Positions 1,916-27,234 of a stretch of 29,516 nucleotides of DNA are shown piece by piece; positions within the stretch are counted from its first letter, which is position 1; each line of letters begins with the position of its first letter. The position numbers and the translations under genes are program-made. Below the pieces are notes generated by a model. That model did no database searches, was not told the origin of the DNA, and saw only the letters and a program-made list of their open reading frames with translations. Origin of the DNA: Piromyces finnis finn (lineage: Eukaryota; Fungi; Neocallimastigomycota); assembly GCA_002104945.1 (NCBI GenBank), contig MCFH01000135.1, positions 1 through 29,516 on the forward strand. The letters are read 5' to 3'.

Positions 1916-2051
1916 CTTTTTTTATTTTAAAATAATTATTAATATATAATATATATAAAAAAAAAATTAATTCATAATTTCTAAAAACAGATGTTTTTAT
2001 TTTAATTTTATATATTATTATATATTAATAATTATTTTAAAATAAAAAAAG

Positions 2052-3088
2052 GTGAAATTCTCGTTAACGAAATTGCTCCACGTCCACATAATTCTGGTCA
2101 TTACACTATTGAATCTTGTGAAACTTCACAATTTGAACAACATATTCGTGCTATTTTAGATATGCCATTAGGTTCTACTAAGATGAGAGTCGGTGCCGCT
2201 GCTATGGTTAACATTCTCGGTACTGGAAATGGTGAAGAAGGTTTAGCTGATACTCTTCGTCCTTGCCAAGCTTCTATGACTATTCCTGGTGCTACTGTTC
2301 ATTTATACGGTAAACGTGAATGCCGTAAAGGTAGAAAGATGGGTCACATCACTGTAACCGCCGATACCATGCCAGAAGTTGTTGAAAAGGTTGAAAAACT
2401 TTAGAAATATGCCAAATGGTAAGAAATAAATAACTTCAGCATTTACCAATGGTTGCTATTATTATGGGTAGTGATTCCGATTTACCAACTATGAAGCCAT
2501 GTGCTCAAATCTTAAAGGACTTTGAGATGTTCCATTTGGAACTTTCTATTGTTTCTGCTCACCGTACCCCAGAAGAATGGTTGAATATGCAAAGAATGCT
2601 CATAAGAGAGGTATTAAGTTAATTATTGCTGCCGCTGGTGGTGCTGCTCACCTTCCAGGTATGGTTGCTGCTATTACTCCACTTCCAGTTATTGGTTGTC
2701 CAGTTGCCTTAAGAGTTCTTGATGGTGTTGATTCTTTATACTCTATTGTTCAAATGCCAGTAAGTATAATAACATTTATTTTTAATAGTTTTATGATTAG
2801 AAAGCTATTTTTTTTTTTATTAATAAAAATAAATTTAACTAATGATGATAACTTCTTAAAAAATTATTTTATTTATACTCTATATAAATTATATAGCGTG
2901 GTGTCCCAGTTGCTACTGTTGCTATCAATAACTCCACCAATGCTGCTTTATTAGCTGTTCGTATTCTTGGTTCTTCTATTCCAAAATACTTAGATAAAAT
3001 GGTTAAATACCAAACTAATATGAATGAAGAAGTTTTAGTTAAAGTTGATAAATTAGAAAAGGTCGGATGGGAAAACTACCAAAAGTAA
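2052..3088 (+). CDS. ADE2: Phosphoribosylaminoimidazole carboxylase (fungal PurK-PurE fusion), 3' portion only; 5' exons cut off at the palindrome centre; one intron 2760-2896
   Basis: PurK-type motifs [14 protein letters not shown] and HLYGK...RKMGHIT, followed by PurE motifs [39 protein letters not shown]|[20 protein letters not shown]. Stop TAA at 3086-3088. A few 1-nt indels lie between 2400 and 2580. Confidence 0.95.
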
Positions 3089-3594
3089 ATTGAGTAATTT
3101 CTTATTTCTTTTCAATAGCATTAAACTAATAACAATAAATAAAGCAGTTGATTAAAAATAATAATGAACTTCAACTTCCCAAAAAAAAAAAAAAAAAAAA
3201 AAAACAATACTTATATTGTTGCATAAAAAATCTATTATTAAAATGAAATAAATCGCTAATAAGTATTTATAAAAAAAATAATAACAATAATACTAATTTA
3301 AATTATAGATAACTGTATTCATTATATTTTTAAAAATAAAAAATAATAAAAAAAATATTAATAATAAAATATATATATATACATTTAAATATATGTAAAT
3401 ATAAGTATTTTATAATAAATAGTTTAATTATAATAAAAATGACCTTTTATTTTATTCTATTATATTTATAAGTATTTTGAATTTATTTAATTTGTAAAAA
3501 TGGTTTTTAATTTCTATTTTTAAGCATTTATTTACATTCAAATGTCATTACAAAAATTATTTAGCAAATTATATTTAAATCAAAATTTATTCAT

Positions 3595-7245
<3,651 letters not shown>

Positions 7246-25359: not shown

Positions 25360-25821
25360 TTTGTGTTCTTATTCCTTATTTAAAATAAATTAAATAATTT
25401 ACTGAGAAAGAGGGAAATTAAGTTTTATTATTTTGCATTTCTTTTTTTTTTTCGTGATAATTTTTTTCCACCTATCATCCAATCATTAATCAACAATATA
25501 TCATGTGTATTTATGTATATATATATATTCATGAATCTTCATTTAAGAAAACATAAATTTATGAAAATTTGATTTATATTTTTTTTTATTTATTGTAATT
25601 CTTTAGTATAAATATTTTATTTTAATATTTCTATTTTTTATTTATTATTATTATTATTAATATCTAATTTATTTTATTTTAAATTTATGTGTTTTAGCAA
25701 TTATTTCGGGGTTATTTATTTTATATTATTTATATTTTTACATTATAAATAAAAAGTATGTATATGTAAAATTTTAATTCGTTTTTTTTAATAATGTTTC
25801 TAGTGTACTACTAGTTAATAT

Positions 25822-26595
25822 TTAATTACTTTTATTTTCAAAAGCATCAATAATAGCTTGGTACATTTCCATTGCAATCTTTATTCTAACTCTATCCTCA
25901 TCTGAATTTTTGGTAATTGTCTTTCAGCTTCAATTAATTTTGTTTAGTGGCAGATAAATCAATATAATCCAATGGATAAGCTTCAGCAGCGGAAATACTC
26001 ATTGATTTATCTGGATTAATATTGCAAACCTCCACTTACTATTTTTTTAAAAAAACAATAAGTTATTAATTAGATAACAAATTTTTACTTTAAATTAATT
26101 ACAATACAATATTACCAATAAATTTTTTAATTTCTTTATTTTGTTCAACTTCAACAAGTCCACCAAGAATACGTTGAGCAAAAGCATCTTGTCCAGCTTT
26201 AATTTCAACAGGTCCTTTTTCTGTTGTAAATTTTACTCTTTCAACTTGTTCATTGTTGAAAAGGCTCTTTATAAAAATGACATTTCAAATTACATTTGTT
26301 AATATATTTTAATTTTTCTTTATTCTTTATTATTATATTAATACATTAATAATTTGATTTTACTTTTTTTGGGGCAGAGAAATTTAAAGAAAATTGTTGT
26401 AAAGAGCGAGTAGCTATGACATGGGTAACTGTATATTTGATATTATAATTTTATTGATTAAAACAACAAATTAATTATTTTTTCAATAAAAAATGAAACT
26501 TTAATTACTATGATAAATTAAGATGATATTTTATTACGGTTTGGTATTAATTTTGTTTTATTTAATAATTTTAAAGAACTGTTAAATAAAGCCAT
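25822..26595 (-). CDS. ATP16: Mitochondrial-type F1-ATPase delta subunit with N-terminal organellar presequence (exons 26538-26595, 26364-26428, 26116-26266, 25822-26038)
   Basis: Exons 1-3 splice in frame with GT-AG ends: MALFNSSLKLLNKTKLIPNLTHVIATRSLQQFSLNFSAPKKSLFNNEQVERVKFTTEKGPVEIKAGQDAFAQRILGGLVEVEQNKEIKKFI. Exon 4 (a few indels) gives VSGGFA..NPDKSMSISAAEAYPLD...KLIEAE...IAMEMYQAI, collinear with yeast Atp16 (LQFALP, PGVVEV, KKFFISGGFA, AIEAFPL). Confidence 0.88.
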
Positions 26596-27234
26596 TTGAT
26601 GAAAGGATATTTGACTAATTTTATAGATAAAAATAAAAAAGGAAGTATATTATGAATTTATTAAGAAATATTTTTTTTTAAAAAGATAGATGAATTTAAT
26701 AGAAATTTACTCTTTCATTTATTAAAGTTTATTACAATATATTAATAATTTTAAGTGAATTTATCCACATAATTTATATTTTCAAAAATTTTATTTTCGT
26801 TATTTAAATTAATTATATAGAGTTTTTAATATATAGATTTAATATTTTATCTTTCTTATGTAGAAGTAGAAAAAAAAATAACTATATAATAATTATAAAA
26901 ATTTAAAAACAAAAACAAAAGCAAACACAGAAAAGGCAATTTAAATTTACTTTATATATGTTTTTAGTATTCTTGCTTCTTTTTTTAATAACTAAATATC
27001 GAAGCAACATAAATTTAAATACTTAAATTATTAACGGACTATAATAAAGTAAAATAAAAAAATGCAGATAAACAAAAATAACAATTATTTTTTTATTTAT
27101 CAAATTTATTATATTTTAAATTTTTATATAAACTGATCATATATTTTAAATATATACAAAATTATGAATACTATCAATGAAATTTTTTTCAGTAGTAGCT
27201 TTTGATAACTTTAAATATAGAGTGCATAATTTAA

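Follow-up and report, generated by a model that had tools for sequence, protein, structure and literature searches.

A spliced and expressed ATP16 gene in the gut fungus Piromyces finnis and the case for an F1-ATPase without a canonical membrane sector

In mitochondria, the delta subunit of the F1-ATPase is the homologue of bacterial epsilon and, together with the mitochondrial epsilon subunit, it couples gamma to the c-ring, while alpha3-beta3-gamma alone hydrolyses ATP. Import of proteins carrying a presequence needs a membrane potential and, in yeast and human cells of the rho0 type as well as in dyskinetoplastic Trypanosoma brucei, this potential is generated by the F1-ATPase together with the ADP/ATP carrier.

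For gut fungi, the most complete account was given by Wilken et al. in 2021 (PMC8561657, Table 3), who listed alpha, beta, gamma and delta subunits of ATP synthase in N. lanati and in five other species. All four N. lanati subunits were predicted to be mitochondrial or hydrogenosomal, the delta orthologue being assigned by DeepLoc to the mitochondrion, and they were expressed at 1-26 TPM. No membrane subunits were found in the six gut fungi, JC-1 staining provided evidence of a gradient in N. lanati, and the function of the soluble subunits was left open by the authors. According to the same paper, the notion of an ATP synthase goes back to Youssef 2013 and Marvin-Sikkema 1994, and later papers on gut fungi refer to a 'putative ATP synthase' and call its role unclear. 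An ADP/ATP carrier has been shown in Neocallimastix hydrogenosomes, according to a section of PMC5168858 (its references 70-71) that also describes many ADP/ATP carrier transcripts in Piromyces. Outside the fungi, a section of Lewis et al. 2020 (PMC6993867) on the genome-less hydrogenosome of Plagiopyla frontata proposes electrogenic ADP/ATP exchange, operating without proton pumps, as the source of the import potential, and F1 subunits are reported there for Cyclidium porcatum. We found no proposal in the literature that combines F1 hydrolysis and ADP/ATP exchange for gut fungi.

An earlier note on the present locus, made from the sequence alone, had cautioned that F1 subunits might already have been noted in these fungi. 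Alpha to delta are indeed published, and the system-level lead is already known since PMC8561657 lists F1 subunits without a membrane part. The additions made here are small: the epsilon subunit, a full-length P. finnis delta model with its N-terminus, a change in a conserved delta motif, and a warning about one contig of the assembly.

The window, which is the whole stretch of DNA that was analysed (positions 1 to 29,516), constitutes the entire 29.5-kb contig C41 of the P. finnis assembly. It is AT-rich, with a G+C content of 14-38% per kb, and it carries an ATP16 gene with the following features:

Exon 1, 26538..26595, minus strand: ATG start, 19 codons plus 1 nt encoding MALFNSSLKLLNKTKLIPN, the first part of the leader.
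Intron 1, 26429..26537, minus strand: 109 nt, GT..AG; the joint 26428 to 26538 is present in the RNA contigs X2, X3 and X5.
Exon 2, 26364..26428, minus strand: (L)THVIATRSLQQFSLNFSAPKK, comprising the end of the leader, the proposed RS/L cut and the first beta-strand.
Intron 2, 26267..26363, minus strand: 97 nt in the window; the joint 26266 to 26364 is present in X2 and X3.
Exon 3, 26116..26266, minus strand: SLFNNEQVERVKF...KEIKKFI, the beta-sandwich core with the altered motif GPVEIKAGQDAF.
Intron 3, 26039..26115, minus strand: acceptor ATAG at 26042-26039.
Exon 4, 25832..26038, minus strand: VSGGFAIINPDKS...IDAFEK and stop; broken in the window, with five bases missing.

The four-exon structure claimed in the earlier note lies on the minus strand and is borne out by two RNA contigs, X2 with 676 nt and X3 with 556 nt, which span the ATG and skip all three introns exactly; all of these introns are of the GT..AG type. 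Both contigs extend beyond the ATG, to 26640 and 26687, giving a 5' untranslated region of at least 92 nt, and exon 1 has an in-frame stop 5' of the ATG at 26595. X5 carries only the joint between exons 1 and 2 and covers the 3' part of exon 1, to 26569, such that this joint is present in RNA from three studies. Read together, exons 1 and 2 encode MALFNSSLKLLNKTKLIPN, a Leu codon split by the intron, and THVIATRSLQQFSLNFSAPKK, and exon 1 aligns with the N-termini of the delta proteins of A. robustus and N. californiae. The complete translation of exon 3 is SLFNNEQVERVKFTTEKGPVEIKAGQDAFAQRILGGLVEVEQNKEIKKFI. At intron 3, position 26116 is followed in the RNA contigs by TAAGTGGAGGTTTTGCAAT (minus strand), yielding FI-VSGGFAIINPDKS with the conserved SGG; an alternative acceptor TAAG, four bases on, which would give ...FIG-VEVCNINPDKS, is ruled out by the RNA. 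When the extra bases present in the RNA are included, exon 4 becomes a single frame, VSGGFAIINPDKSMSISAAEAYPLDYIDLSATKQNLIEAERQLPENSDEDRVRIKIAMEMYQAIIDAFEK, ending in a stop codon. Public RNA runs contained 30-45% of the words sampled from the 1-kb stretch around the gene, a proportion to be expected if the transcript is spliced, and the delta transcript was assembled at high k-mer depth in two runs. ATP16 is therefore a genuine four-exon gene that is spliced and expressed.

Individual exons score weakly against reference families. Exon 3 alone matched Pfam family PF02823 at an E value of 0.057 (13.8 bits) and yeast delta in the PDB at 0.93, and the identification rests for this reason on full-length orthologues and on the public P. 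finnis protein. The window model was searched exon by exon, and database proteins were used for the full-length comparisons. Searched against 1.84 billion representative proteins, exon 3 led to a 161-aa protein of Neocallimastix californiae with 86% identity, and the delta orthologues considered are:

P0001: Neocallimastix californiae.
P0004: Anaeromyces robustus.
P0005: Piromyces sp. E2.
P0006: Piromyces finnis (BCR36DRAFT_304486).

P0006, the public P. finnis model, corresponds to an intact reading of exons 3 and 4; it is partial, lacks exons 1 and 2 and begins only with the final codon of exon 2, and its residues 2-51 are identical to exon 3. With a curated cut-off of 27 bits for PF02823, which all of these orthologues exceed, it scores 28.4 bits, while the A. 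robustus and N. californiae proteins reach 36.2 and 34 bits, respectively. Its residues 3-120 align with residues 27-146 of bovine delta, up to the last bovine residue (E 8e-12), and its residues 2-111 with yeast delta (E 1.3e-13); a second family, PF21335, yields 14.7 bits only. P0001 matches yeast delta at 6.6e-17, plus 21 more delta or epsilon chains, and delta is 74-81% identical across gut-fungal genera. On these comparisons, which agree with the assignment in the earlier note, the gene is identified as nuclear ATP16, encoding the delta subunit of a mitochondrial-type F1-ATPase in P. finnis, and that it both encodes this subunit and is expressed can be considered almost certain.

The leader, MALFNSSLKLLNKTKLIPN-L-THVIATRS/LQQ (the slash marking the proposed cut), comprises 28 residues and contains neither Asp nor Glu, the first acidic residue of the protein occurring at position 47. 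Its basic residues are K9, K13, K15 and R27, with Arg at position -2 of the proposed cut. The same layout occurs in A. robustus and N. californiae, which share the sequence IA(T/S)RSLQQFSLNF, and the leader is thus conserved across three genera, confirming and extending to the Anaeromyces and Neocallimastix orthologues the earlier description of an acid-free presequence ending in ATRS/LQQ. The mature N-terminus of yeast delta aligns a few residues before the proposed RS/L cut. We infer that the leader directs delta to a genome-less hydrogenosome and is cleaved near RS/L. The database model for Piromyces sp. E2 (P0005) begins with a spurious N-terminus, MSFFFFFFIKS, and the RNA-supported leader is absent from it.

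That P. finnis is a gut fungus bearing hydrogenosomes without an organelle genome, as the earlier note had assumed, is in accord with the marker genes, COX1 being absent from the assembly and an [FeFe]-hydrogenase present. A second [FeFe]-hydrogenase-like locus (C207:190713-191901, minus strand) carries one TGA and four TAA codons in one piece of the match; these stops may be due to introns, or the stretch may be a further one that is prone to errors. For the ADP/ATP carrier, pattern searches with RRRMMM produced only low-complexity or chance matches, the pattern being uninformative.

The earlier note had proposed a profile search for the remaining F1 subunits, and alpha, beta, gamma and epsilon are all encoded in the P. 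finnis genome:

Beta, C2:458239-459984: single exon, 632.8 bits.
Alpha, C1:1011011-1012984: at least seven exons, summing to about 610 bits.
Gamma, C13:677680-679078: five exons.
Epsilon (ATP15), C178:~681146-681400, minus strand: two exons, with WKAAG-V-SYLEVLS across the intron.

P. finnis thus encodes all five F1 subunits. In beta, the P-loop GGAGVGKT, the catalytic GERTREG, the Walker B motif and DELSEED are all intact, and to judge from these motifs the F1 looks catalytically competent. Epsilon is a P. finnis protein of 74 aa with a 14-residue N-terminal extension and is annotated only as a hypothetical protein; the epsilon sequences P0007-P0009, from P. finnis and two other genera, score 30-32 bits against PF04627 (cut-off 27) and are 80-91% identical across genera. 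A predicted delta-epsilon complex obtained a score of 0.70, the best of three controls scoring 0.00. Among solved complexes, 51 of 78 attain that mark, as do 2 of 108 mismatched pairs; the score expresses likeness to complexes already solved rather than binding, and it may reflect memory of them since similar complexes have been determined. At least 79% of the contacts were shared between the prediction runs, with a partner pLDDT of at least 54.

For the membrane sector and peripheral stalk the picture is different. A search of the 56.5-Mb assembly for subunit a (PF00119) was negative at E <= 1, and the assembly-wide matches to PF00137 comprised solely three two-hairpin loci, which are V-type proteolipids and not F-type c. 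The single candidate for F-type c found with TIGR01260 (C225, E 0.57) turned out to be a transporter gene read in antisense. OSCP yielded one chance-level exon in the assembly (E 0.5), at C113:596669-596848; although this exon has a Pfam E of 0.011 by itself, it lies between exons of an opposite-strand transporter and is unsupported by PDB, Atlas, TIGR01145 and homologue searches. Two candidates for subunit b were also rejected, one belonging to a sugar-phosphate-transporter-like gene and the other being a chance match inside a 1,733-aa frame. The assembly search gave no match to subunit d and a single chance-level match, and hence nothing credible, to IF1. ATP11 and ATP12 gave no matches, and their profiles barely register in control genomes either. 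The six-frame search of the P. finnis genome with PF02823 missed delta itself, being insensitive to short split exons, and the negative results for Fo and stalk are consequently weak for small split genes. Of the two possibilities raised in the earlier note, an F1-only ATPase or a fully nucleus-encoded Fo, the first is thus favoured in so far as a, b, c and OSCP were not detected, at a sensitivity that is low for split genes. From the gene content we consider it probable that P. finnis has an F1 without a canonical Fo.

The delta subunit itself is altered where it would face the rotor foot. The near-universal stretch G-x-x-G-[IV]-L-x-x-H-x-P, which reads GRIGVLANHVPT in yeast and GAFGILAAHVPT in cattle, is replaced by GPVEIKAGQDAF in P. 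finnis (window 26180-26215), so that the protein departs from the conserved pattern of the PF02823 family, and the EIKAG core of the replacement is identical in four gut fungi. In the equivalent stretch of E. coli epsilon, E31 cross-links to the c-ring loop and H38 to gamma. A motif that has been rewritten and yet conserved would fit a lost partner at the rotor foot and a changed one alike, and its conservation in four gut fungi suggests a changed contact rather than merely a lost one.

On balance we lean towards a hydrogenosomal F1 that contains the ATP16 product, lacks Fo and is used in a manner resembling that of rho0 cells as the best overall explanation. Delta and epsilon would be seated on the foot of gamma within an alpha3-beta3-gamma-delta-epsilon complex, and this F1 would most likely hydrolyse ATP in the matrix instead of synthesising it, given that neither a canonical membrane sector nor a peripheral stalk can be detected. 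By lowering the matrix ATP/ADP ratio, it could drive electrogenic exchange of ATP4- for ADP3-, thereby creating an inner-membrane potential that would support presequence import. Such a potential-generating role for F1 and ADP/ATP exchange, built by analogy with rho0 and dyskinetoplastic cells, would be the likeliest use of this F1, but it is a plausible and tentative proposal only. Its main difficulty lies in the direction of the carrier: gut-fungal hydrogenosomes produce ATP by substrate-level phosphorylation and export it, and carrier operation in this direction consumes a negative-inside potential. Because ATP export runs the carrier oppositely, F1 hydrolysis would amount to a futile cycle unless the two modes were separated by time or condition, and they would need to alternate. 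The most specific version, in which a naturally Fo-less F1 had its delta foot remodelled to GPVEIKAG after loss of the c-ring and powers the import potential by reverse exchange, must be regarded as doubtful.

The chief rival is a complete F1Fo whose nuclear-encoded a, c, b, d and OSCP subunits are too divergent or too intron-split for family searches and which makes ATP from a proton gradient or pumps protons. It is favoured by the strict retention of delta and epsilon, the c-ring couplers, both of them conserved: given that alpha3-beta3-gamma suffices for hydrolysis, keeping these two subunits would suit an enzyme with a hidden rotor partner no less than an F1 on its own. The rewritten yet conserved GPVEIKAG could likewise signify a changed partner, the family search did overlook delta, and the authors of PMC8561657, who saw the JC-1 gradient, deemed unannotated subunits possible. 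Against this, few membrane proteins are as well conserved as a and c and yet PF00119 found nothing, PF00137 led only to the three V-type loci, the TIGR01260 candidate proved to be transporter antisense, and the OSCP candidate found no support in PDB, Atlas or homologue searches. Moreover, none of these subunits was reported in the six gut-fungal genomes of PMC8561657, and no proton-pumping respiratory complex is known in gut-fungal hydrogenosomes. We judge a hidden divergent Fo unlikely overall.

It is still less probable that the F1 genes are relics that retain hardly any function today, or none, and are in the course of being lost. The low expression in N. lanati (1-26 TPM), the negligible effect in a metabolic model (PMC8561657) and the degenerate state of the textbook delta motif could all be read in this way, but five of five F1 subunits are intact in P. 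finnis, the catalytic motifs of beta are preserved in an exon of 632.8 bits, the delta leader is conserved and the delta transcript is found at high k-mer depth in two runs. With delta 74-81% and epsilon 80-91% identical, conservation across genera renders a functionless relic unlikely, and an Fo-less F1 in active use continues to be the reading that we prefer.

The copy of the gene in the window requires separate comment. In a megablast comparison, contig C41 matched C184:315146-343262 from end to end at 97.4% identity, the 28,169 alignment columns containing 27 mismatches but 606 gap openings. The intact ATP16, also of four exons, lies at C184:339517-340284, with an open exon 4 (C184:339517-339725), and a genome search with the public P. 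finnis protein likewise recovered a second, unbroken copy at C184:339517-339956. Contrary to the earlier note, exon 4 is not a single reading frame in the window, where it needs three frames, plus a fourth for the conserved VSGG at the exon start. Judged against the RNA contigs and the second genomic copy, exon 4 of the window lacks two bases between 26020 and 26026 and one base each behind 25935, near 25906-25910 and behind 25834, the last of them being present in X2 among the RNA contigs. The end of the gene placed at 25822 by the note has also to be corrected: the apparent stop at 25822-25824 arises because of the base missing behind 25834, and the real stop, following ...IDAFEK, is at 25832-25834. 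Over positions 25700-26700, C41 and C184 differ by nine indels (10 nt), all of them bases absent from the window and located where the RNA differs, in introns, untranslated regions and exons, and by no substitutions. The pattern of missing bases is typical of an unpolished long-read contig. Furthermore, window positions 1 to ~1985 form the inverted complement of ~1985-3985, the complementarity of the arms reaching 100%. A hairpin-like beginning of this kind has the look of an artefact from a long read in which the adapter was missed, and not of a biological feature. The window copy is a redundant, indel-rich duplicate and its frame breaks are assembly errors; since the differences between C41 and C184 in the gene region are missing bases matching the RNA, there is only one real ATP16, at C184:339517-340284.

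A true second locus carrying a young pseudogene paralogue of ATP16, to which the separate contig and the frame-breaking changes might seem to point, is highly improbable given 27 substitutions against 606 gap openings across 28 kb, nine of nine differences in the gene region being bases missing from the window in introns, untranslated regions and exons alike, and a contig that begins with a 2-kb hairpin typical of a missed-adapter long read; as a reading of the broken exon 4 it is rejected on comparison with C184 and the RNA, from which the window differs by missing bases alone.

In practical terms, the analysis provides a corrected P. finnis delta model and an alert that the duplicate C41 creates false frameshifts, such that any frameshifts or 'pseudogenes' on this contig are suspect until compared with C184. 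More generally, it bears on how the genome-less hydrogenosomes of gut fungi maintain the potential for presequence import: with a complete and intact-looking F1 set, a conserved delta leader and no canonical membrane partners found, the question has been narrowed to a feasible experiment.

Among the closest known systems is that of N. lanati and five other gut fungi, whose 'ATP syn: sub delta' shares with P. finnis delta the orthologue group, the organism group and the absence of membrane subunits; the table in PMC8561657 contains alpha, beta, gamma and delta only, and epsilon is added here for P. finnis. The hydrogenosome of P. frontata belongs to a ciliate, a lineage different from gut fungi, and in the section of PMC6993867 cited above F1 subunits are mentioned for C. 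porcatum and not for P. frontata.

In comparison with yeast Atp16 and bovine ATP5F1D (2xok_H, 2hld_H and 1e79_H), the alignment runs the full length of the beta-sandwich and the C-terminal helical hairpin, the F-[IV]-SGG and AxEAxPL motifs are common to the gut-fungal and reference proteins, the cleavable-looking N-terminal leader is of similar length, and P. finnis, like yeast and cattle, has an epsilon partner. The identity between the P. finnis and the yeast or bovine delta subunits is only ~30% and, unlike in yeast and cattle, neither the c-ring nor subunit a nor a peripheral stalk can be detected in the P. finnis genome.

With rho0 and dyskinetoplastic cells, gut fungi have in common a genome-less organelle, an intact-looking F1, an ADP/ATP carrier (shown in Neocallimastix hydrogenosomes) and the need of presequence import for a membrane potential. 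They differ from these cells in that the gut-fungal state would be natural, ancient and stable, as opposed to a loss that is recent or was produced in the laboratory, and in that the organelle is a net producer of ATP. If the proposal is correct, the Fo-less F1 of gut-fungal hydrogenosomes would be nature's own equivalent, ancient and stable, of the rho0 and dyskinetoplastic condition.
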